The notes beneath the pieces were generated by a model. It did not search any database, was not told where the DNA came from, and saw nothing but the letters and a program-made list of their open reading frames with translations. A stretch of 64,000 nucleotides of DNA from Paragordius varius (taxonomy: Eukaryota > Animalia > Nematomorpha), in NCBI GenBank assembly GCA_964247055.1, contig OZ176051.1:1116001-1180000 (forward strand), written 5' to 3'. The stretch's first letter is position 1, and every line of letters starts with the position of its first letter. The position numbers were made by a program, and so were the translations under genes. Below are positions 7,308-29,163 of this stretch, piece after piece.

Positions 7308-10300
7308 CGTAGTAAAAATAGTTGTATTTTTCTTCTTGAAAAGGTCACCACATGATATAAGCCTTACCTAGAGCTATTATGAAACATGCGTAATCGGTCT
7401 GCAAATAAAAATATAACTTCAAGAGTTAATTATACCTTAGCATTAACTATATAAAGTTTTACTATTAATGCAAGACAAAATAAACATTCTATATCTTTTA
7501 CAGGATTAAATGCCCATAAAAATTGTAACGCATATAATTTCACGAATTATGTGTTCTACTGTGCTAGTTTAAATATATGTGCCAGATATCTGAGAAAAAT
7601 ATACCAGTTAAAATTGAAGCAATAGCAAAATAAGCGGTAATTTTTTAATCTTTGACAGATAAAGGGTTTAGATTAAAATATTTTGTTTATATCAGAGAAC
7701 AATATCGGTGTTTTAAATAATATTCTGAAAAAATTGTATCAGGTTTTTTATAGCCCTTTTATTTCGTTTAGTGGATTCGAATTGGGGTAACTTGTGACCC
7801 CAGACTTTATTTGAATTATTTAAAGGTCTACTGAAAAGAGAGGTTATAATTTAAATTTATGCTTCTTTTCTGTTACCTATGCAAATATTATCTATATATT
7901 TTGTATGTATGATACAAATTGTAAGGATGTTAATATTTTCATACTGTATATTATTTTTGTATTATGATGTAAATAATTTGGTTAACACGTTTTTCTTTGT
8001 ATATCATGCACGTCATGGATTATCCTTAATTATATTTGTTTTATTTGATATCATGAAAACTCCCTTTATAAAAATTGTATATATACATATATCGCAATTT
8101 TTACAATAAATCATTATTATTATATAATTAATTTATATTCGTTATGATTTAAACTTAACAACATCGGTGGTCAATCGAATTCCGAACCATGACAACGGTA
8201 ATCGATGCGTCTAGAAATATAATGATAATATAAAGTTTGAGGAATACGTTGATTATTTGACAAATGTTATGGAAGCGAAAGATATTCCAGTAACAGAACA
8301 AGCCCTCAAAACAACCTTGCTTGCCTATGGTGGTCTATTGGTTGTACGCAAAATTAATCAACTACCGTATCAGAAAAAATAATGGATGCAACATGGAGCG
8401 AGATAATGGCAACATGCCTAAAAGTTTTTAATCCCACAAAATCAAAATTTCAAAGTAGATTTGAATATTTTTGACTTGTGCGGAGCAACGTTGAATCTTT
8501 TATTAATTTTTAAAACGGGTTATAGCAGTCGAAGAGGCCAAATTCAATGATTCGATTGAGGAACGTATTCGGATGCCTTCGTCATTGGTTTACGGCTACC
8601 TCAATCAGAAATCTATATGCAATTGAGGTATCCCGATGCCGAGATCAACGGGCAACCCGTGCCAGAAACGATAGTGGATCTCGCACTAACACATAGGATG
8701 CTAGGACCGCTTAATAACAATAATGATAATACCATTTATAACAATAATAATAAGTCAATTACAACACAACAATAATAATAAGGCCGAGTGTTCACGACAG
8801 CCAAGCAAAACCCCAAACACATTCGTGCAATCGTTGTGGTGGTAGGCATGGCTACTAATGTCTTGCCTAAAACCGCAATTGCAATAAATGCGGAAAACCC
8901 AACACTTCGCTAAAATGTGTACATCAAAAAACGCTGACAAGAGTATGTTCAACTGCCAGATCCATAAAAAAGCGATGCCAATGTCACCATGAGTAAGAAT
9001 AATGATTCAAATACAGAATAAGAATTTTTTACGACACAGGAGCCAATATCGGTGTAATCAACTTTGAGACATGGAAGCAAGTTGGTAAGCCAAACTTTAG
9101 ACCCATACCGCCATTAAAAGCCTAACTGGGCGTAACAACAGTTACAGTGCAAATGAATGGGCATAATTTGGCGGACGCAGAATGTTGTGTACTGAAAGAA
9201 AGGTCAAAGGCACTTCTCATTTGAGTCTTGGATTGGATCACGACATCGACATTCCTAAACTACGAATTAACTTTTAAAACATAATAAAATTATTAAAAAA
9301 TTTCCTAATCTATTTAAGTAGGAATTAGTCTGTTGTGACCCGGTAAAAATTCATATAGCATCCAACGCATCCCCCAAGGTTTGGCCATGTCATCGAGTAC
9401 CGTTACCCATAAGAGCAAAAGTTGAGAACGAATTGCTAAGACTGCAGAAGGATATTATGGAACCAATAGATCGCAACCTCAAACTTCTTACATTGGCCAC
9501 GCCAACCGTCAACGTACTAAAGGTGAACATAGAGCTGAGAATCTGTAGCGACTTAGAGTCACGATCAACAAATGGCTGACGCAGGGAATCTCACATCACC
9601 CCAACGTTTGATGATTTGGTAAGTATGCTTGACGAAGGACAAGCTTTCACTAAGATTGATCTGAAAGATGCCTATCTACAAATGCCCATTCTAAAGGATC
9701 ACAACGCCTCCTAACAATTACAACACTAGGGATTTTCCCGCTGAAAAGAATGCCTTTCGGATTAACAACAGCACCGATAATATTTCAGCGAGACCAATAA
9801 AAGACTGTCCAAGAACTTGTACATATTTAGATGATGTTTTAGTAACTGGCAAATCTAAAAAGCAACATTTAATAAATCTTAGCAAGGTTTTAAATCGGTT
9901 AAAATTGGCAGGTTTTAAATTAAGAAAAGATAAAATAAAAATTGGTGAACCTTCAGTAAGTTATCTGGGATAATAAGTAATAAAGATATAATAGTTTTGT
10001 AAGAATAACAATCAATGATTTTAAAAAACCTGTGGATATCTTTTAGGATTTTTTTAGGATTTTTAACATATTATAAAGGATTTATACCCACTCAATTATT
10101 GCAAGTGATTTACATAGGTTAACAAGTTGAATGTCAGATGGAGCTGGTCGGAAAAACACAAGAAAGGTTAGTTAGCAGCAAAAGAATTGTTAAGCTAACA
10201 AGTGTTTTTAACCATACAATCGGGATAGTAAGTTAATTGAAACCGATGCCTCACACATAGGGTTTGGATATATTTTAAGTCATGTGGTAAATGGTGAAAT

Positions 10301-14506: not shown

Positions 14507-14516
14507 ATTATTATAT

Positions 14517-17064
14517 TTATTTCATCATTTCAGCTTTTTTATTTATCCTTCTCATACATCTTAAGCAATTGTTTTGTTCAAAACACAATCTACGTATTAT
14601 TATAATTATTCATGTACTTGTGATAAACGGCTAAACAAACGGGGCAAATATTTGTGTTGGAATCAAATGCATACAAAATGTCATTTTTGTTACAAAATTC
14701 GCAAATAAATCCTTTTCCTTGACACAGTTTACATTCGTGTTTGATGTGATTGCTAAACGAATTAAATATGAGACTTAATTTGGGCAATAAAATATTTTGG
14801 TTGATTTGAATCAAATCTTGAATGCTATACATTTCACCCCCATCTAAAAAATGTCGAAATTCTTTAAGCTATATATATAATACATTTATCGAGTTATATT
14901 GAAACCTTTTGCAATAATTTCTGTTTGATAGCCACGCGGCAAGTAATTAAATACATTTTCATATACAAAAAATGCGTCCTTAGTTCATGCAATCGACCCA
15001 ATTGAGGTATTCGGTTAAAAAGCATTGGATTTATATCCATCAAATGAATACACGGTTTTTTTTCCATAACCTCCAAAAAAAGTTGAGATTCTTTGCTAAC
15101 TCTCCGCATTTTGAAATCCCAATTATGTAATACTCGCGCTGGAATAGTCATATAATTGTTGCCAAAACAATCATTACAATACGCTAATCCTGTGTAATCA
15201 CAAATGTTGGTGCTTTTAACTTCCATTTTATCTAAATTAGTATTAGAGAAAGAATTAATTAAACTATCGATGACTTTTAAGATGACCAAACAATCATCGA
15301 AAATTAAACATTATTTTTTTAGCTTAAACTTTTTTTGTAGACACATGACCGCCCAAAAGAGTTATGCTTTAATTTTAATATATTCAAAAGTCGGCAAAAA
15401 ATTAAAAAAATAGCGGTATTATAATTGATAGGGAAATCAAATTAAAGTACTTTAAAATCAATGTTATTAAAAACTTTGACCGTTGGATAGGATATATGGC
15501 AAAAAAATGAACAAATCGCGATATTTTTAAAAAGGTCTTTCTACAAGTCTTAAATTTTTCATTTATAAGAAAAATTTGCAAGTTTAATTCCAATTTCTAA
15601 AATGTAAAAATATTTGGCAATCAAGTTGGATGATGATTTTTAAAGTATTTTTTAATTATTTTCTTTGACGCTAAATACAAATATCGATGAATTCGCAACC
15701 GAACCATGTATTTATTACATTATTTTATTTTAGATAGGAAAAAATCTTAAAAATAGACGTAAGTATATAAACTAGTGGTATTAAAACCGCGCCCAAAGGC
15801 CGCATGCGGTTCTAAATCCTTTTTGTGGCTTTGAATTATTTATCAAATTTTTATGTACTTATTTGGAAAGTAATATCTACAAATATGTCAAACAGCTATA
15901 AATTTATTTGTAAAAAATGCCCTTACAAGAAAATATATTTTTGGCCCTTCAAAATCTTTTGAGTACCACTGTAAACATAAAAAATTATCGTATATTCAAA
16001 TCAGAATAAAAATGCCTTAATCATAAAATAAATTATCCTCGATGAGGTTAGTTATAATGAGAAATATATTGTATTTATTTTATAAGCCATTTTATATAGA
16101 GAAACAAAGTGGGCTATTTACGTACTTCGTATTTTTTCGCACATTTAGCATTTTATTACCGATCAATAATTGAATATAAATTTTAGATTTTTTTGTGCAA
16201 AATCGTATAATATTAATTTTTTTCGTGATAAAATATCGCTACAAGACAAAAATGTATGTATTTATTTTATTAACATTTGTTTTTTCTCATCTTTTTATTA
16301 GTAATTCCGAAATTTTAATGATAGTTTATTCATATTGTGATTTGTTGTAATACTTTTTATTTTGATATTGTATTTAGTTAAACCTAGATATCTAAACAGC
16401 CAAATTGTTGTTTGATTTACTCAAATTTTAATAAGAAAACCAGCGAAAAAAAAATTTCTTAGGTGATATTCTAAAATTTACGCATATACCTTCTATGTCG
16501 AGAGTGTTTTTACATTTAGCGCATTTAAAATCTTGATTGGTGTAACCAGTTTCGGGTCGGATACTCAAAATATATGTCGGGTATTTATCAATATAATTTT
16601 TTGGGCATTGTCCATCAAATTTTGAAAAACATTTCGCATGGAGAATAACATTGCAAACTTATATTAAACCACAATTATTACATATACATCGGAAGGATTG
16701 TTGCAAAAGCGATAAAATATTTTGATTACATTGAATGCATTTGGTCTCAAATCTAAAACTCTTTTGAGCAACAAAAAAATGTCCATTTTGTGAAGATTTG
16801 TTATGGAAATCCTTTATTTTATGTGATAAGAACTTCGGCATCTGCCATCATTTTATATTTGATTAAAATAATTTCATGCACTAAATTTTTATATGCGTTT
16901 GAGTTTGGTGTAGTTTTTTTCAGGCCGCCAATACATGCTTTTAATTGGGATTCTAAAAAATCCCTATTGTCACAAAAATAGATTGAATCACGCGTTTCAG
17001 CTTGTGAAAATGATGCGGCTCTTAAAGACGACCAAATTTCTTGCTGGGTAATTGGTGGATTCAT
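14517..17064 (-). CDS. DEF8: DEF8 homolog (C1-like domain plus Rubicon-homology zinc domain), 392 aa; exons 17064-16834, 16811-16682, 16657-16490, 15231-14906, 14868-14618, 14589-14517
   Basis: The spliced CDS is 1179 nt and in frame. Colinear with DEF8 as I recall it: GHFF...[50 protein letters not shown]...[25 protein letters not shown]. Confidence 0.92.
15773..15971. mobile_element. Small hAT-type MITE in DEF8 intron 3
   Basis: Ends TAGTGGTATTAAAA and TTTTGAGTACCACTG (CAGTGG-type TIR), with a subterminal GGCCGCATGCGG. The target duplication is imperfect. Confidence 0.55.
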
Positions 17065-17065
17065 A

Positions 17066-18295
17066 ATGTCAGCTGAACTTGAATATTGTGTAGCGGGGTG
17101 TGCTCATGGAGAATTGGATTTGATATTTAACACAATCAAATATATGAATAAAGAAAAAAAGCGTAATATTGTTTTACTTCTATGTTGTGGTGATTTCCAA
17201 AGCGTAAGAAACGAGGTTGATTTAGATTCTATGGCAGTACCTAATAAATATAAGCACATGAAAGATTTCCATTACTATTATAATTGTGAAAAAACAGCTC
17301 CCTGTCTCACCATATTTATCGGTGGAAACCATGAAGCTTCAAATTATTTATGGGAACTTCCCTTTGGCGGATGGGTCTGTCCAAATATATTTTACATGGG
17401 TCATGCTAACGTTTTAAATTTACACATAAGGCATAATGAGAAGCGTGCGTAAATTTTATGTAATTTTTTAGTTACTAAATACAGAATTGGTGGACTTTCT
17501 GGCATTTTTAAGCAACCGGACTACAGTAAAGGCCGATGGGAAACACCACCATTCAATGATAATTCGAAAAGAAGCATTTATCACATAAGAAATCTCGATG
17601 TATATCGCCTCAATCTTGTTAATGAACCGTTAGACATGTTTTTATCTCATGATTGGCCCAAAAACATACATTTATACGGGGATCAAAAATTGTTATTACA
17701 GAAAAAACCGTTTTTCCGGAACGATATAAAGTCGGGCGAGTTAGGGAATCCGGCATTGACGGAACTTTTGAAAAAACTTAAACCTTCGTTCTGGTTTAGC
17801 GCACATCTCCATGTCAAATTTGCAGCTCAAGTTGATCACGGGACGATAAATATTGAAGAAAATGCAGAAAATTACAATGTTTCATCATCAACAAAGTTTT
17901 TGGCTTTGGATAAAGCTTTACCCAAGAGATCTTTTCTTCAAGTCCTTCCTTTCGATTACAAAAATCAAGAAACAACCGAATGCCAAAATATTGACACCAA
18001 AAATTCAGATATTCAAGAATCATCGCCAAAAATTACCCTACATTATGATGTGGAATGGATAAATATATTGCAACTTACCAATTCTGAAACTAATTTATCC
18101 TCAGGAACGACTTTTATTGAACAAAAAACTCAAATAATTAATGATGATTTTTCTAACACAAAAGCATTAGAAATAAAAGAATGGAATGAAGATATGAGAG
18201 TGGCCGAAAATCATATAAACATTCAAACAACACAATTTTGTGAAAAATTTAATATACGTAATATATGTAAAGAATTATTAGCTTTGAATAAATAA
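17066..18295 (+). CDS. DBR1: RNA lariat debranching enzyme, 400 aa; exons 17066-17444 and 17472-18295
   Basis: Metallophosphoesterase motifs [46 protein letters not shown] and TKFLALDK. A 27-nt GT-AG intron restores the frame into RIGGLSGIF. Confidence 0.95.
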
Positions 18296-18344: not shown

Positions 18345-21300
18345 TTATTTCTTGGCTGAAAGCGAATTAGCCATAGCGAAATTCGCATATCCATAATTTT
18401 GAGTTCCACTGTAGTTTGTGTAATTCGAGCTCCCACTGACTATAAATTAAGACATTAAAAATTAATAAAAAATAAAATATATAATAAAATTTAGCGAAAA
18501 CTAAATATGTTTAATATTGGCTAAAAATCAATGAAATGGTTTTGCTATCAGGCGAATTGAGCTTTGTAAAAATTTATTTTAATCTAATAATAATGGCAGA
18601 AAGCCGCATTTATTTTAAATTATAATGATAAAATGGATGACATTTGTTAAAAATAATTTTTCATGCCTAAAATTGAAAGATTGTTATTTAAATAAATTTA
18701 CAATGATATTTACTTGGGTATGGGGATGAATTGTTTCCATACCATTTGATTTCTGCCAATTTATCGTTCAAATCAGAAAATTGTATAATTTTATCGCTCA
18801 TTTGAATTACCAAAGATTGCAATTTGTTCAAATCAGCCCGATGCATATATAAAAGTTCCGACGTTTCATCAAATGAAGCCTAAAAATTTGATTTAAATTT
18901 AAGGGGAAAAGGCAGAAAAACGGATCAATAACAATATAAATATATTTTTTAAATCTAAAATGTATAATAACGAAATATATTACTGAAGACATTTACAAAA
19001 AAGAATAAAATATTTATTAAATAAATGCCGTCAAATATTATTTATGATGATTATTATTCTGTTATTGGAGATGCTTATATATTCCAATTAATTTTTATCA
19101 CTGATCTCCTAAATAATTAAAATGATAAATCTAGATAAAATAGTAGGATCTGAGTTTATAATAAGTGCCAGATGTTTGTTCATTGGATACTTACAAAACT
19201 TAACTGCAATTCAAAAAACGTATTATCCAATAACTTAATATTCCATTAATTTATGGATTATTTTATTTGAAGTATCAAAAAAACGGAGTGTAGTTTATAA
19301 ATAAATTAAAAAAGAGCGATAATGTAAAATAAAATTACCAAAATTTCATCATTCATGATCATTCTATTCAAAATTTTGGTTATGACAGGGATATCAAGTT
19401 CAAACATTGAGTTGAGTTTCTTTAGACTAATGGTATCATAATATCCACCATAGGCTAACAAATAGACTCGCAAACATTCCTGTTTAATTTTGCCAATTAT
19501 CATGTCACAAATTTTGACGCTTTGAGGGAAAAGATCCCACACCTAACATTTCAATAAAAAAAATAAACTAGAATAAGTATGGAAAAAATTGTTTGAGTAA
19601 AAGTTTTACATACTTGCAGATTACAAAAAATTTAATCATGTTCATCCAATTTAAATAATATAAAAGACTTGCAAAATAGACAAACTTAAGTATGAATACG
19701 AATACAGTTAATAAATTTTTATAAAGATCTTAATAAATATAAAACAACAAATAAGTGTCAATAATGTTGTGGAGATTAAAATTATTACAAATATTTATAT
19801 GAATGCTTTAAAATTAATAATATTGATTGGATGAATGAAAAACATGCTTGTTTGCATATATGTTAAACATTACATAATCTTTTAATATACTCCAATTATA
19901 TTGCTTGGAAAATATTTTATTTCGAATAAATCAGAGCTAACTTTTATATTATACCATTTGAAGTTCAAATTCACCCTTGAACAATTCAAATTCACCCTAA
20001 AAATGAATTATGTCTTGTCGGGCTAATATAACTCATCATTAATATAAAATATATTCTTATGGCATAGTTTATTATTATTTCAGTATTATATTAATTTTAT
20101 TCGTAATTTTATTCTTTAAAAATATAAAAAAATATAGGTAATTTTTAATCTTTAAAACACATAATTTCTTTTAGGGTGAATTTGAATTGTTCGAGGGTGA
20201 ATTTGAATTGTTCAAGGGTAAATTCAAATAGTTTAAGGGTGAATTTGAACTGTAAATGGTATATTAGGGGATTTGTATAATTGCAATCGGGATGAATGAA
20301 AAACATGCTTGTTTGCATTTATGTTATAAATCACATAATCTTTTAATATACCCCAATTATATTGCTTGGAAAATATTTTATTTCGATTAAGTCACAGCTA
20401 ACTTTTATATTATCAAAAAGTAAACTAAAATATAAAAATGCGTACCTTGGATTTCGTTTTATCATTAATGATGAAATCTCGACAGGCTTTCCAATCGCCG
20501 CGTTTCATGGCTTTATGAGCGGCGACCACGTGATCTCGAATATTGTCAGGAGGACCTAACAACAATTGGCGCTCACTCATTCGCAGCTGATAGTAAAAGT
20601 TTTTGCTAATCATTTTGCGTTTCTCCACGTCACCCACTTAACATAAAAACAGTTTTGTACCATTTTTTTCAGTATTAATAAAGACAAAACAAAAGAGTAC
20701 GGAATTAATTAATAATTTTTTGCGCAGGAACTAACAAGAACAAAGAGACCTAGAATAACACTGATATTCAACGTAAACTAAAATGTACGAAAGACCCTTC
20801 GTCCATACAATTAATATTATAAAAAAGTTTAAAAAATCTTTATATTTATACTATAAATTAATTAAAAACTTTTCTAATATATATTACCAGCTATGTAAGG
20901 CGTTTCCAAACACATTGCACAAAAGAGGTAAACGAATTCAATGACATCCAAATTGATGTGCATGTGGAAAGGCACTTGTCGCAATCGTTCCATCTTTTCT
21001 TGTTCGGCCGTTAAAGGATTTTCCGCAAAATGAGCTCGGACCAAAGGATTTTGACTCAATATTCCTTGACCTGTGTGGAATTGTGTAATAAAAAGATTAT
21101 AAAAAGAGTAAAAAAAAATTGTTTTAGCAAGCTCATAAGTAATTGGTCAGTATAAATTATATACAAGATTTTAAGTCTGGCTAAAAGGAAACCTAAAATT
21201 AATAAAAACAAAAAATGTTTTCAAACTTAACAACTCACTTATGTAAAATTACATTTATCATTTCACAATATCTTAAAACCTGTATATAAAATATTAGAAT

Positions 21301-24300
21301 GTTAAAGCAAAATATACCTAATAATTCCTTTGTCCTTCCACTGCTTTGTATGTCTAGGAGGGCGTCATGAGCTTCCTTAAGCAGGGCATGGCGAAAAGCA
21401 CAAAGACCCAGTTGGACGATTGCCCGATTATAAAGCGTTTGCGTTGGATAATCGCTGTGTTGAATCGAATCCTGTAGGTGGGACATGAGAAGCAAATCTC
21501 TGGCTTTGAACCAATCGTCATGCAGGGATGCTATAATTGAAAAAGATAATTTAAATCTATAATTTGATAAAATCTTTTTTAGGTTAGTGCGAATGACCTC
21601 AAAATGTATAAAACAAATTGGCTCTTTTCTAAATAAAATCTTAAGGGCATATATACTTTAATAATATTGTGTAGTACATTTTTCTCTAATCGATTATTGT
21701 TTGATAAAGATATAAAGGACTATAAGCATAGCATAAAATATATTATTTTTTCTCTTTTAAAATAAACTTCTCTTTCATCATTAGAGGATTAGATAATGTA
21801 TATCATGGTTTGACGGAATAAAATCTTATGTTTATTAAATAATAAAACACTTATCATTTTATAATCAAAAATGAATGTTTAAATTAAAACATTATTTCTA
21901 TAATTGGTGTGGATATTTATCCTTAATAAAATTAAATCCAACATTTTAAATGCAAAAATTGATTAAACAAAAACCGAAATAAATGTGAAAGAGTATGGCT
22001 CGTGTTCTCATGCGGTCAGTGTCATCATTCTGATACACGTACGTAAAGTATTGATCCAGTTCACAACTAGAAAGGGAAACTTTATAATGTGAATGTTCAA
22101 TGCGTCTCATATAAATGCGACATAACTCATTACAAGTGCTTTGAGAAGTGGCAGCTTCGAGATAGCTTTGTAGCTCATCAATCAAATCACACATTGTTTT
22201 CTCATCTTTGAGTCGATCCAAATATTCTGTACTATGGGCATCGCAGTTTTGAAGAATTTTAGTAAACTCTTCATCAGCCAATTCAAGCAAGGAAAGAACA
22301 CACATTTTCATTTTGATTGTCCCATCGGGTTCAGGCTAAAGACATATATATATATACCATTATTTATTCAAAAAATTAAGCATGCGTGCAAATATATAAA
22401 TATATATTTTATTTTTCGACTTTTATAGTAAAGTCTTTATCAAAAAAAATATAAAATGAATTGTAACGTAATAAGATGCCTTATTAGTGTGATATAGGTA
22501 ATTGATGAAAAAAAACCAGTAACATCAAATTGCTGTATACTGGAAAAAATCAATTACCTTTACAACATTATAAAAGACATTAATATTATATAACAGGGGT
22601 GGCCAACGAGGTGACCGCGGTCACTTTCGTGACCGCGACAACTCAAAAAGTGACCGCCTGAAAATATTTTTTTTTAAAAATTTTATTGATTTTTTTCGGA
22701 TAGTTGGCTACTTCTGAGCGAATTTAAATTTAAAATACAAAAAAATACGGTTTAAATTAAAAATAAACGTCTAAGAAAATGGTGTAAGGAATTATTTTAT
22801 TAATTATAATTCATATGTTTTGGAGCATTTGCATTAAAACTTAAAATCAGTCATTTCCCTTGAATATATCAAAACTTTGAGCAAAGCTTATTCATAAATC
22901 AGAAGCATAATCGTGAAGTTAGATTTGATTTGATACACCAAAAGTAGGTTTTTAAAACTTATATTTTAGAATGAGCCAAAAAAAGTTGTACAGATACAAG
23001 AAAGATTGGGAGCACGAATACTTTTTTAATATGATAAATGAAACATGCATCTGTCTAATATGCAATAGTACTGTTGCTTTGCCCAAAAAGTCAAATATTG
23101 AAAGACATTATAGATCTCTGCATCCACATTACTCCAAAAACTACCCCTTACAAACTCAAGAACGCAACATTAAAGTAAAGGAATTAAAAGAACAATTATC
23201 CGCCTCACAAAATAGCATACTTAAATACAACAAAGACTATAAAAATGCTACGATTGCTTCATTCAAGGTAGCGGAAATACTCATTTGGAACAATAAGCCA
23301 TTCCAAGATGGTGAAATATTTAAAGAAGCCTTTATTAGCGCTTGTGATATTTTATTTGAAAATTTTGATAACAAAAATAATATTATGACAGCTATTAAAA
23401 GCATAAGCTTATCGAGAAATACCGTTATGCGCAGGGCTGAAGATATTAGTAATAATCTTGATGAAATTTTACATGAAAATATTAATAACTGTATTTTTTT
23501 TCCTTGCAACTCGATGAGTCCACCGATTATGTAGGAATCGCCCAATTATGCATTTTTATTCGTATGATATTTAGTGATTTATCTGCAAAGGAGGAATTAT
23601 TAACTATAATACCTCTCCACGAACGAACCAGAGGGCAGGATATTTTTGATTCTTTTTATAAATTTATCACAGATACGAAACTTCCCATCGTAAAACTCGC
23701 ATCTACACCTACTGATGGAGCTCCAGCTATGATTGGCGTTAACAACGGCTTTATCGCTTTATGTAAAAATCACAGTGCATTTCCCAAGTTCATTGATTAC
23801 CATTGTATAATCCATAATCAAGTTTTATGTTCAAAAGTTTTAAAATACCATCATGTAATGAACCCCTGTTTTAAAATTGTTAACGCCATTCGAACAAAAA
23901 GCTTGTCCCGCCGCCAATTTCGAATTTTGCTAAATGAGTGCGGCGTAGAATATGGAGAACTTTTATTACATACTGATGTAAGGTGGTTGAGTCGTGCCGC
24001 ATTTTTAATTAGATTTAGGCAACTTTTACCACAAATAGAAATTTTTTTAGATAATTCTAAATTTTCATACCCCGAATTGAAAGATCAAGATTGGCTGCTT
24101 GATCTTGCATTTTTATGCGATATCACGGAAAAATTGCATAAATTAAACATCCAATTACAAGGAAAAGATAAAACAATAATGGATATGATGGGTGCTTTAA
24201 AATCTTTTAAGGAAACACTAACAGTAGTAGAAACACAATTAAAAAACCGAGATTTAAAACATTTTTTTAATCTGGCAGCGGTGTCTGAAAAAATAGAGAT

Positions 24301-27300
24301 TCTCTCTTTTGAAAAATATGCAGATGATATTGGTCTGCTTATTAATGATTTTGAAACGATTTTCATCTATAAATAAACTTGAAGACATCGCTATTTTTTT
24401 ATCATGCCCATTTAATAATAATAATAATGTTGAATATATTGCTCAAAAACTCAGCCACTTTCTTGGTGTACCAAATTTAGCAGAGTTGGAAGAGGAATTA
24501 ATAAATGTTAAATGCGATATCCATCTAAAATCATTAGGATCAGATATATATAAATTTATAAATAAAGATAAATACCCCCATATTTGGAAAACCGCTGCAT
24601 TATTCAATTCTTTTTTTGGATCCACATATTTATGTGAATCGGCTTTTTCAATTATGAATGCTATCAAAACTAAACAGAGGTCACAATTAACTAATAAACA
24701 TTTAGAATCCTGTTTGAGAATTGCTTTGACTTCATTTGAACCTAATTTAGATAAACTTTCTGAATTTTTTCGCAGTCGGGCGTTTTAAATATTTTTTTCT
24801 TTATTAAATATGGATGTTTATCGAGTTGTATTTTCGCTTAGGAAAAAGCCGATTTACTAAAAAATATGTGGATAGAATTAAAACTGATACAATTTTAATG
24901 TACTCTTATTTATGTTCAAATTATGGTTCTAAATTGGAATGCTATTTTTTATTTCTTTTATTTTTTGTATCATAATGTATTCTCCCCTGTAATTTCAAAT
25001 GCATTGTTTAAATTTTTATATTGTAAAATTATAATAGAAATTTAATAAATAAATATTTTGAAGTGTTTTATGTTGGTTAAAAAATTAAGGTAGTTAATAA
25101 CCCGTTGTCTTTTAATTAAAATTATTTTTGTATTTGGTTGATAGATAAAAAAAATTACAATTTTAAAATGGTTTAAACAAGTCACTCTAATCTGTAAAGC
25201 AGGTATATACATCATTTAAAGTGTTGATTGAGTTTTTTTGATAAATATTTCTGGGTGACCGCGAACTCTTTTTTTAACAAAAAAGCCAAAAAAAAGCTCG
25301 CGACAAAAAAAGTGTGGCCACCCCTGTTATATAACATATATATATATATATATATATAAATATCATATCTATATAGCATTATTTCTATTTTAAATCAAAA
25401 AAAATCTTGAAGCGCGCATATTAAGTATTAAAATTTTGAAGCGCAGAACCACACCCATTTATACCTAATCGCAATGCAAGGTTGTTTAAAATATATAACC
25501 TCTAAAAATAATAACTTTAATCTGATAACTATACAAATTATTTTATGAAAATTAAAATCTATAAATTAGAAATAATTTAATTCAATTAATAATTACCGTA
25601 AGATCTTCGCTTTCCTCGATAATATGAGTACCAATCTTAACGTTGGGATTTTCTTTCAACAATTTAATGAGCTGAGACAATTGTTGAAGACATTCGGTCC
25701 ATTGTGTCGCTTTCATGCAAGCGTTCAACTGAATAAAAAACAAAAAAAATAATTTTAGATCACAATTATCATTTTTGGGGTTTGAAAATAATTTGCCATA
25801 TGAGTAGCTAATAGAGAAATAACAGTGTCAGTACAAAGGATTTTTTCGTTTTTTCTAGTTTAAATACTGACAAACCTGTTTTTGTGCGGTACAGAGGTTA
25901 CTCAAAAAATCACAAAAAATTTTTTATAGTTTGCAACTAGAACTAAAAAATTTTGTAAAAAAAGGTCCGCACAAAAAATTTCTTTATGAGCATATGGGGA
26001 AAATAAGAAATGAATACCACGTCCATTTACATGTAAAAACTGATTAACACATTAATTATTTAAAGATTTATCATGTATACAGAAAAAATTATAAAAGCAT
26101 TTATAAAATTAGGTAATCTATTTGGTTGTGAATAAGTATTTGTAGATTTGTTAATATTTGAGTACTGTCTTTCATCAAACTTTTGCATAAGCCTTTTTAA
26201 AAAGTGTAAAGTTCTGGAGATAAAAAATTATCATTATTATCAATTTTTTCGATATTAATAATTTCGTTTATTAATTTATTATTATTATTCATATTAATAA
26301 TAAATGTTATTAAGATAAATTGTGAGTCAATAATACTTCCAAAATAAAATTAAATATTAAAAATAAGATATTTGCTTAATATAATGACTGATGTTTCATT
26401 GTAATAACAGCAGATAAATGTAAGAACATACGCAAATTAAAAGATCACACTTTCGGACAAAAAATGTAAATCCAAATCGCACAAAAGGAGCTAAAAATGA
26501 TCAACTCACAAAAATGTTTTGACTGTATATCCGATTCAAGCGAGAAAATTGAAGAAAAATTAGTCATATACATTTAAATAACTTTTCCTTATTAACGTTC
26601 TAAAAGATCCAAAAAATTATGATAAAATCAAACCTTTTGATTGTAATCAAAGTATGAAGCTACAAGATTGAAACTAATCTTGATAATAAGTGGGGCATCC
26701 ATACTCCCATCCTCTTGAGCGATTTTGAGGAGTTCCTTGAAAAGAGCGACGGGCTCAGTATTTGCCGCGTTTGATAAGGAGGAGGGAAGCCTTCTCCCTC
26801 GACTCGCAATCACTTCCTGAACCTTTTTCAACAAGGCTGCCCGTGTGATTTCTTCATCGGGCCCAAATAGTTGAACTTGCTTTTTCTGTCAAACCAAAAT
26901 AAGGATAATTTTTTACAATAATTGTTATCGACTAGCTTTAAAATGTAATTTTTACTAAATAATTAAATTGTTTTTTGCAAATGATAATTAAAAATTAATA
27001 TTAAGCATGGTGAATTCCCATACTAAAAAAGTGCAAAAATATGTGGGCGTCTTTGTTTTGACCGTTTTCTTTATTTACCCTAATTACTGTATAAAAATAT
27101 GCGGCAAAAAGAATTTCCTAATTTATTAGGGGTTTTAATATTGTTCAAGCTGTTTTCTAATAAACACATCAACATTTATTTATAATCACGGGAATGTTTT
27201 TAACCATATATTCTTAAACAAAATATAACCGTAATTCAAATTTAAAGCAAATAACTTAAATTATTAAAAAATCTAAGGAGAACGCGAAAAATTTGAAAAA

Positions 27301-29163
27301 TTTAATTAAAAAATAAAAGAAACAAATCGAAGGATGAGTGCAAATTATTGTCACCGAATGGAAAAAATATTTCAAAAAATGGGCTGTCATTGATTTGGAT
27401 TTTTATAATAGATTTTACATTTTATCTTGAATTTTTTGGGAGGGGACGCAAGAATTATAATTTATTTAGTAAGACGTAAACAAAAAAAGGTTGAAAACCA
27501 CTGTTTTAAGTAATTTATCCCAAATATTAAACTTAAATCTTTGTAAGTTTATTAAATAATTTAAACCAAATACTAAACCAAATACTAAACTTTTAATCGA
27601 ATTAAAGATCATTGGTGGCATGAAATTAAGCGCTCTAATTATTTAGTCAAAAATCTAAACCCAATAAATACTTTATAGGGTCCACGCTGAACTCCTTTCG
27701 TGACAGATTCCCATTTGCCTTCGTCTTCGCCCTCTTCTTCGTCTTCTTTTTTGACTTTTGTGGCTACAAAAAAACATTTTTAATTAACGTACATAAAAAC
27801 AAAATTAAGACAAAAGGTTAGAGAAATAAAATGTAATAAAAACCGTCAGATTTGCGTTTTTCTTTCTTTTTCTCTTTCTCGCCTTCATCTGTAGTCGTCC
27901 TATAATTAAAAAATAAAGCAAATATCCAAGTTTTTTAAATAAAAAGTCGCACAAAAGAAAAATCTGCTAATTTTTTAGGAGGTCAACCGAAATAATAGCA
28001 CAGCCTTAAACTCACCATATTTAAAAACCCCGTTTTAGATTATCCATATTAAAAAAATATAATATTGTTGTAGCTTTATATAAACACCACATTTACTTTA
28101 GACTTTTGTAGTATTATATTAAAAAACTTAAACTTTTACTTCAAACGTTTAGTTTTAATTTATATCTTAAATTTTTAATTGCAAATAAAAAATCTACTTT
28201 TTCAAAAATTTAGCCGCTAGATTTGATTTCTTTTCGTCCTCGGACATGGAGGAGGCATCACTTTCCGATTCTTCCCAATCGGTGGAGCCTTGCTCGTCAT
28301 CGAATCTCACTTTTGCTACTTTTTTATGATCGGCTAAAAATGAAATGAAAAAAGTTAAATGGTACTAAATAACATAATATAAGATGATTCACGCATTAAC
28401 AATAAATATCAATAAATTTAATAATTCGTTTTAAAAAATTAAAGATAAATTAAATAAGGTAAAATTACAATACAACTAGTTTTGATTCCAGAATCGAGGG
28501 AACAAGTAGAAAAAAATGAATAAGAACAAAAAAGGTTAAAATATTACTTTTTATTTCAGTCGTCACCTCCTCGTCTTCTGCGTGACTTGCTGTTTGGTTA
28601 TCACTTTGAATTTCCTCATTTTCTGAAAAATCTTCTAGTTTTTCCTTCTCCCGAAAATTCGTTATAAAAGTTTCGTAATCTTTATTGTATTTCTTTAATT
28701 TTTGCCGTAAAGATGAAAGACCTCGAGAATTATTTTTGCTCATAGATTTTTTGGCATCTTTGTCGTCCCAACATTCATTAACAAAATTTTCCAATTCAAT
28801 CAAGCAACGTAAGAAGAAATGTGGTGGTGAGCCATTTTTTTCGTCAAGAACTCCCTTGGCTTTAGCGTATATTTTTTGGAGTTCCTCAAAATCCGACAAA
28901 ATCTTACACATGTCCTTAATTTTCCGATGATTTTTTATCTGTTTTATAATATTCATCATTTCTTCTTCTCGTTTATCCTTCGAGCTCCGTACTTGTCGCT
29001 TAATTTCATCCTCATCATCACTTAACTGATATGTTCTAAAAATATTTTATATATATTTAACAAACTTTGTGGGAATTTGCGGTTTAAACGATGTTATAAT
29101 CTCGCTTTCGTCACTTTCCGTATCAGAATCGGATCCACCAGCTTGTGCAAAAAATTTCGACAT
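18345..29163 (-). CDS. EIF3C: Translation initiation factor 3 subunit C, multi-exon (about 13 exons; the hAT lies in the intron between ~25597 and ~22336)
   Basis: [14 protein letters not shown] start, [86 protein letters not shown] and a PCI-domain C-terminus. The last exon (18439-18345) is inferred from phase and a low-complexity tail. Confidence 0.95.
19829..20413 (+). repeat. ~125-bp direct duplication (19829-19953 and 20290-20413) bracketing MITE A copy 3
   Basis: GGATGAATGAAAAACATGCTTGTTTGCAT...GCTAACTTTTATATTAT occurs twice with scattered substitutions. Confidence 0.9.
19950..20263 (+). mobile_element. MITE family A, copy 3, in an EIF3C intron
   Basis: Complete TATACCATTT...AAATGGTATA termini, 21-bp arrays, and an interior colinear with copy 1. 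Confidence 0.9.
22594..25326 (+). mobile_element. Full-length Buster/SPIN-type hAT DNA transposon, 2733 bp, inside an EIF3C intron
   Basis: TIR CAGGGGTGGCCA at both ends and a perfect 8-bp target duplication TTATATAA (22586-22593, 25327-25334) with the central TA typical of Buster elements. Confidence 0.95.
22971..24788 (+). pseudogene. hAT transposase (GTF2IRD2/SPIN-like) split into three ORFs by two frameshifts (~23500, ~24358)
   Basis: N-terminal zinc motif (CICLIC...NIERHY), then QLDESTD, TDGAPAM, HCIIH, VRWLSR and [10 protein letters not shown], followed by RSQLT..HL of the dimerisation domain. Confidence 0.9.
25336..25358. repeat. (AT)n microsatellite next to the hAT right end
   Basis: Directly visible dinucleotide run. 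Confidence 0.9.

Follow-up and report, generated by a model that had tools for sequence, protein, structure and literature searches.

A DEF8-like gene and DBR1 with divergent start codons one base pair apart in the nematomorph Paragordius varius

Classical bidirectional gene pairs of animals have a non-coding spacer with back-to-back transcription start sites, typically 100-1000 base pairs (bp). In the compacted genomes of microsporidia and nucleomorphs transcription of neighbouring genes overlaps, Giardia makes mRNAs with ultra-short leaders, and Nematoda, the sister phylum of Nematomorpha, join spliced leaders (SL) to their mRNAs by trans-splicing. Protein-coding pairs that overlap head to head at their 5' ends have been documented in human (PMC8076222, PMC11890862), e.g., INO80E/HIRIP3 (PMC11890862), and the human overlap depends on the choice among several start sites (PMC8076222). 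In this work we analysed a stretch of 64,000 nucleotides (nt) from the nematomorph Paragordius varius (assembly GCA_964247055.1, contig OZ176051.1, positions 1,116,001 to 1,180,000 of the forward strand; hereafter the window, numbered from its first letter), in which a DEF8-like gene on the minus strand and the gene for DBR1, the lariat-debranching enzyme, on the plus strand diverge from start codons that are separated by a single base.

The locus shares something with each of these systems. As in the housekeeping bidirectional promoters of animals, a pair of oppositely oriented housekeeping genes diverges from a single short region, and the pairing is found in two nematomorphs; unlike in the classical pairs, the start codons lie 1 bp apart and the non-coding DNA is gone. 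If leaders exist, the two mRNAs would overlap in antisense at their 5' ends and the promoter would lie in the transcribed region of the partner, as in the human 5'-overlapping pairs; the differences are that overlap with the coding sequence of the partner would be forced by the geometry here and that our pair is known from DNA alone. Compacted genomes likewise push promoters and untranslated regions (UTRs) into neighbouring genes or shrink leaders to a few bases, but they are compact throughout, whereas the window is rich in transposons, has kilobase-sized introns and shows compaction only at gene starts. Nematode-style SL trans-splicing with outrons would account for an acceptor-like site near an ATG and for tiny intergenic gaps, yet no leader, SL RNA gene or suitable DBR1 acceptor was found in the window. 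We regard the pair as an extreme case of the known head-to-head genes with overlapping 5' ends, the overlap being what the geometry predicts unless the mRNAs are leaderless.

The junction at 17060-17071 reads ttCATaATGtca on the plus strand, that is ttCAT-a-ATGtca, and CAT-A-ATG spans 17062-17068 with the DEF8-like start on the minus strand, one A, and the DBR1 start on the plus strand:

17062 to 17064, minus strand: DEF8-like start codon, CAT on the plus strand, the first in-frame ATG after a TGA at 17104-17106
17065, no strand: the A that is the sole base between both start codons, by direct reading

An earlier reading of the sequence without database searches had placed one A between the DEF8 ATG (17064, minus) and the DBR1 ATG (17066, plus), and direct reading of the letters confirmed it. 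Judged on the start codons, the 5' ends of the two genes lie well within the 1 kb that defines a head-to-head pair. The 1-nt spacing puts an A at -3 of both ATGs, and CAT-N-ATG is the sole tight packing that does so for both starts. To assess the assembly, contigs of four sequencing runs were compared with 5,001 letters around the junction. Contigs from two samples bridge it with 0 gaps (run X2 record 13, 17032-17421; run X4 record 21, 16991-17273), which excludes an assembly collapse of a longer spacer, the refutation that the sequence-only reading had itself proposed to look for in sequencing data. Among the sample differences listed from these four runs, no indel or base change falls within 17040-17090. 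We concluded that CAT-A-ATG is real and no assembly artefact. One low-depth contig of run X5 (labelled organism B) matches the window from 17059 rightwards and has 12 different letters before that point; on its minus strand CAT-A-ATG is kept and the DEF8 frame stays open, with residues that differ from codon 3 on. This contig may represent a diverged haplotype, another species or an assembly tip.

The gene models were searched exon by exon, and exons were not joined for any search. DBR1 was modelled with two exons:

17066 to 17444, plus strand: DBR1 exon 1, start codon 17066-17068, GCAHG at residues 11-15, Pfam Metallophos
17445 to 17471, plus strand: DBR1 intron, 27 nt, GT-AG, phase 1, position and phase matching the Gordionus intron after ..EK
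17472 to 18295, plus strand: DBR1 exon 2 through the stop codon, Pfam DBR1 C-terminal domain, best match Gordionus DBR1 (E-value 6e-55)

The ATG at 17066 opens a 128-codon frame with the Metallophos match. The predicted protein carries what identifies DBR1, namely Metallophos (PF00149) with an N-terminal GCAHG and the C-terminal domain PF05011. Upstream there is an in-frame TAG at 16979, with no ATG from this TAG to 17066. Exon 1 is 62% identical over 119 residues to DBR1 of Gordionus, from about residue 7 on. The GCxHG motif starts at index 6 in 46 of the 60 homologues that carry it and at index 10 in the DBR1 of the window. The earlier reading had argued that the need for this metal-binding motif rules out the next Met as the start, which stands, as the next Met is residue 27, beyond the catalytic motif; its figure of about 8 codons between start and motif was off, the distance being 10 codons. 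Because of the position of Met27, and because the motif offset and the Gordionus alignment fit, we consider the predicted DBR1 start at 17066 firm. Compared with other animals, both nematomorph DBR1 proteins have 9-14 extra residues ahead of the conserved RIGG strand (17420-17490 in the window), and the intron common to both genes falls within this insertion.

The DEF8-like gene was modelled with five exons, which align in order to Gordionus DEF8 (P0272):

16834 to 17064, minus strand: DEF8-like exon 1, 77 codons, about 35 poorly conserved and then a conserved helix, by homology to DEF8 orthologues
16812 to 16833, minus strand: intron 1, 22 nt, GT-AG, with an intron of about 41 nt at the same place in Gordionus
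16682 to 16811, minus strand: exon 2, first part of the C1 zinc finger, aligned to Gordionus DEF8 residues 115-148
16658 to 16681, minus strand: intron 2, 24 nt, GT-AG, across which the Gordionus alignment continues from residue 148 to 151
16490 to 16657, minus strand: exon 3, aligned to Gordionus DEF8 residues 151-205 (E-value 1e-17)
15232 to 16489, minus strand: intron 3, 1258 nt
14906 to 15231, minus strand: exon 4, first part of the Rubicon-homology domain, Pfam RH_dom (E-value 3e-29), Gordionus residues 203-314
14869 to 14905, minus strand: intron 4, 37 nt, with frame-breaking indel polymorphisms (14869-14891) inside
14590 to 14868, minus strand: exon 5, second part of the Rubicon-homology domain and stop codon, Pfam RH_dom (E-value 2e-22)

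The order typical of the DEF8 family, a C1-type zinc finger and then a Rubicon-homology domain, was found in this model: RH_dom is matched by exons 4 and 5, and removal of the 24-nt intron 2 restores the spacing C-x2-C-x4-H-x2-C of the C1 finger. Pfam C1 gave no match to the split DEF8 exons taken singly. The in-frame TGA at 17104-17106 lies 14 codons upstream of the DEF8 ATG, and the ATG at 17064-17062 is the first possible start in the exon. DEF8 orthologues show poor conservation of residues 1-35, and their helix in front of the C1 domain aligns with residues ~36-75. The helix offsets of the orthologues bracket the model (target position 29-56 for query position 24-35), and an open frame of 77 codons has a chance probability of ~0.002 at the local base composition. 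Further Met residues come only at 72-73, within the conserved helix or past it, which bears out the earlier view that a start at the next DEF8 Met would lose a helix-like segment. Judged by their homologues, both predicted start codons hold up. At its other end the DEF8-like gene (stop codon 14590-14592, minus) lies tail to tail with the gene for EF1-gamma (stop codon 14504-14506, plus), with 83 nt between them, so that the 3' UTRs should be very short or overlapping.

Frame-breaking indel polymorphisms listed for the locus lie mostly inside predicted introns: a 1-nt deletion at 16662 in DEF8 intron 2, a 1-nt deletion at 17464 in the DBR1 intron, and the cluster at 14869-14891 in DEF8 intron 4. 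Outside the small introns they were found at 14509, just past the EF1-gamma stop, and at 16187, in the large DEF8 intron; three further ones (18886-18901) fall in an eIF3c-like gene described below. A 4-nt insertion polymorphism at 14607 (sample S2, run X4), five codons before the DEF8 stop, would alter only the unconserved C-terminal tail of the protein.

The nearest proteins to both genes are those of another nematomorph, Gordionus sp. m RMFG-2023, with 42% identity for DBR1 exon 2 and 55% for the Rubicon-homology exon of DEF8. In Gordionus the accessions of the DEF8 and DBR1 proteins follow each other on a single chromosome, and at that locus (L002) the genes are also arranged head to head: the start codon of DEF8 is at 9872-9874 (minus strand), the ATG of DBR1 at 10001 (plus strand), and 126 bp separate the two. 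Of the proposal to look for the junction in related species, the head-to-head order thus found its counterpart and the 1-bp spacing did not. DEF8 was not found beside DBR1 in one nematode contig and one rotifer contig, and a protein with a 68% identity match to DBR1 exon 1 (P0390) was dropped from the comparison, having a canonical DBR1 start and no DEF8 nearby. The Gordionus proteins have longer N-terminal tails (~14 residues more in DBR1, ~24 more in DEF8), and the distance from GCxHG of DBR1 to Y-x-x-L-V of the DEF8 helix is ~202 nt in the window vs. at least 441 nt in Gordionus. Loss of the spacer is accompanied by these shortened tails and by tiny introns of 22, 24 and 27 nt, which occupy sites where the Gordionus introns are ~41 nt or much larger. 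As the Gordionus genes keep 126 bp between them, we concluded that the 1-bp arrangement appears to be the collapsed form of an ordinary bidirectional pair common to at least two nematomorphs, two species being too few to tell the ancestral state. Intergenic spacing is not discussed in the Gordionus genome paper.

The 1-bp gap leaves no non-coding intergenic spacer to hold a promoter, a geometric point on which the earlier reading was sound. Unless the mRNAs are leaderless, each gene must then be transcribed from within or beyond the first coding exon of its partner. The options that the sequence-only reading derived from this, a promoter within the partner's exon, nearly leaderless mRNAs or SL trans-splicing, are all consistent with the geometry, but the list omits non-coding 5' exons joined by cis-splicing. 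The explanation we favour, and to which we give an even chance, is that the two genes have short, crossed 5' ends that overlap in antisense and arise from one compact bidirectional promoter, the start site positions and the overlap being deduced. DEF8 and DBR1 would be an old divergent pair of housekeeping genes sharing one compact bidirectional promoter region. In P. varius the non-coding spacer would have been lost together with parts of both N-terminal tails, and the promoter and both 5' UTRs would now lie beneath coding sequence, mostly the ~35 initial codons of DEF8 and the ~6 initial codons of DBR1. Transcription of either gene would begin inside the partner's first coding exon and yield short leaders, probably of 50 nt or less, on mRNAs with 5' ends overlapping in antisense. 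Because residues 1-35 of DEF8 are unconserved, this stretch can carry regulatory sequence, and the DBR1 promoter and leader could sit in ~105 nt of low-constraint DEF8 tail. The start site of DEF8 would fall in the first six, weakly constrained codons of DBR1 or in the catalytic-motif codons beyond. Upstream of the DBR1 start the nearest ATGs lie at -53 and -56, and upstream of the DEF8 start the nearest one lies at -43, so that leaders without an upstream ATG are possible up to 52 nt and 42 nt, respectively; in the Gordionus spacer the nearest ones, read by eye, are at about -36 and -41.

Several points weigh against crossed 5' ends. At this composition, 42-52 nt free of upstream ATGs next to the starts are not statistically significant (P ~0.4 for each gene). 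The start site of DEF8 is confined to codons of the conserved catalytic motif of DBR1 or to within ~20 nt of its ATG, and polymerases that face each other would interfere. Among the sequencing runs on record as RNA, none contains the stretch; the contigs of the four runs compared behave as DNA, covering introns and intergenic DNA and having no joints that skip an intron. Searches with DBR1 exon 2 and exon 1 for transcript contigs of the same species gave none, the best matches having 46 and 68% identity, respectively.

Comparison of k-mers between the Gordionus spacer and the window junction gave no common promoter motif: the k-mers common to both are nearly all codons of GCAHG, or AT-rich 8-9-mers out of register. 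One hexamer, ATGTCA/TGACAT, has three copies in the 126 bp between the Gordionus start codons (L002 9916, 9953 and 9966), against ~0.09 expected from its locus-wide frequency, and one copy at the window junction (17066-17071), where it encodes Met-Ser of DBR1. A role as a promoter element is possible, and having been picked post hoc the hexamer serves as a lead only. CCAAT boxes near both junctions and initiator-like or TATA-like matches were rejected as candidates, being not above chance in DNA of 27% GC.

Two of the competing explanations turn on splice acceptors, and in particular on one acceptor-like site:

17072 to 17076, minus strand: TTCAG resembling a splice acceptor, 8 nt before the DEF8 ATG and antisense to codons 2-4 of DBR1 (Ser-Ala-Glu)

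The earlier reading was correct that TTCAG is present there, but its meaning as an acceptor did not hold: with this base composition ~60% of ATGs would have an AG within 20 nt by chance, and the site appears to be at chance level and forced by the DBR1 codons. The further suggestion of an exon-embedded bidirectional promoter system was not upheld either, as the pair is an ordinary one with a 126-bp spacer in Gordionus and TTCAG is at chance level. By SL trans-splicing, transcription would start well inside or beyond the partner, the outron would be removed and a capped leader joined just upstream of each ATG. TTCAG at -8 of the DEF8 ATG, an AG 1 nt before the ATG of Gordionus DEF8 and the trans-splicing of the sister phylum can be counted for it; DBR1, however, has no AG within 38 nt of its ATG (the nearest is at -38), the TTCAG is dictated as just described, no match to an Rfam spliced-leader RNA was found within the 64-kb window, and a promoter inside or beyond the partner gene would still be required. 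In the searchable literature we found nothing linking Nematomorpha with spliced leaders or trans-splicing. Trans-splicing is possible and in our view unlikely, with nothing at this locus that supports it. We give no better prospects to cis-spliced non-coding first exons, in which a distal promoter, in the 1258-nt intron of DEF8 or beyond DBR1, would be connected through a 5' UTR intron to an acceptor near the ATG. Acceptor-like sites exist for both genes (TTCAG at -8 for DEF8; TTAAAG at -38 and T7CAG at -141 for DBR1), tiny introns do occur near gene 5' ends at this locus, and in one variant a 24-nt GT..AG segment at 17004-17027 on the plus strand contains both nearest upstream ATGs of DBR1. 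As a tiny 5' UTR intron this segment would clear both of them, and it is itself a candidate at chance level. All the candidate sites are at chance level in 27% GC DNA and lie within coding sequence of the partner, the 3' end of the eIF3c-like gene at ~18688 closes the other flank of DBR1, and the Gordionus models, in which the ATGs abut a plain 126-bp spacer, need no such exon.

The remaining two explanations do without such acceptors or without the junction as modelled. Near-leaderless mRNAs, with transcription of both genes starting right at the junction or a few bases from it and almost no 5' UTR, are the sole option without overlap, and the CAT-N-ATG spacing supplies both starts with their A at -3. 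Cap-dependent scanning in animals is, however, poor with leaders shorter than ~12 nt unless an element like TISU (translation initiator of short 5' UTR) is present, no such element is visible at the junction, and initiation complexes would have to overlap if the two strands had their start sites 1-3 nt apart; we consider this explanation the least probable. Hardly better placed is a mis-called start, by which DEF8 would begin at Met72/73, or an upstream coding exon would be joined at TTCAG, so that at least one of the genes would have an ordinary spacer or UTR. The weak conservation of DEF8 residues 1-35 would agree with this, and the TTCAG acceptor would join in an open frame. It is opposed by the improbability of the 77-codon open frame, by the homology of residues 36-75 to the DEF8 helix and the orthologue offsets that bracket the model, and by the lack of room, for an upstream exon fits between DBR1 and the eIF3c-like gene on the same strand only antisense inside DBR1 coding sequence.

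If the short, crossed 5' ends that we favour are real, the locus would be an animal gene pair without non-coding promoter DNA between the start codons, and it would provide a natural test of the capacity of coding sequence to act as promoter and of facing polymerases that share ~100 bp. Together with the tiny introns at gene starts, it would point to strong local shrinkage around promoters in a genome otherwise bloated by transposons. Gene finders that assume an intergenic spacer or a minimum intron length would mis-annotate such loci. The window has ~27% GC, with transposase and reverse-transcriptase open reading frames (ORFs) and kilobase-sized introns; as it is not compact as a whole, the shrinkage seems confined to the regions around promoters. 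A wider proposal, which we make tentatively and think rather doubtful, is that compaction near promoters extends across the genome and reaches its extreme in the 1-bp pair, with core promoters routinely embedded in coding sequence and crossed start sites, or else with SL trans-splicing that would be new for Nematomorpha.

Downstream of DBR1, on the opposite strand, lies a gene of ~10 kb (18688 to ~29000), a putative eIF3c-like gene whose ORF fragments resemble human EIF3C:

18688 to 18846, 19306 to 19542, 21946 to 22311 and 28465 to 28959, minus strand: putative eIF3c-like ORF fragments

A set of hAT-like transposase ORFs at 22971-24788 on the plus strand lies within an intron of this gene.

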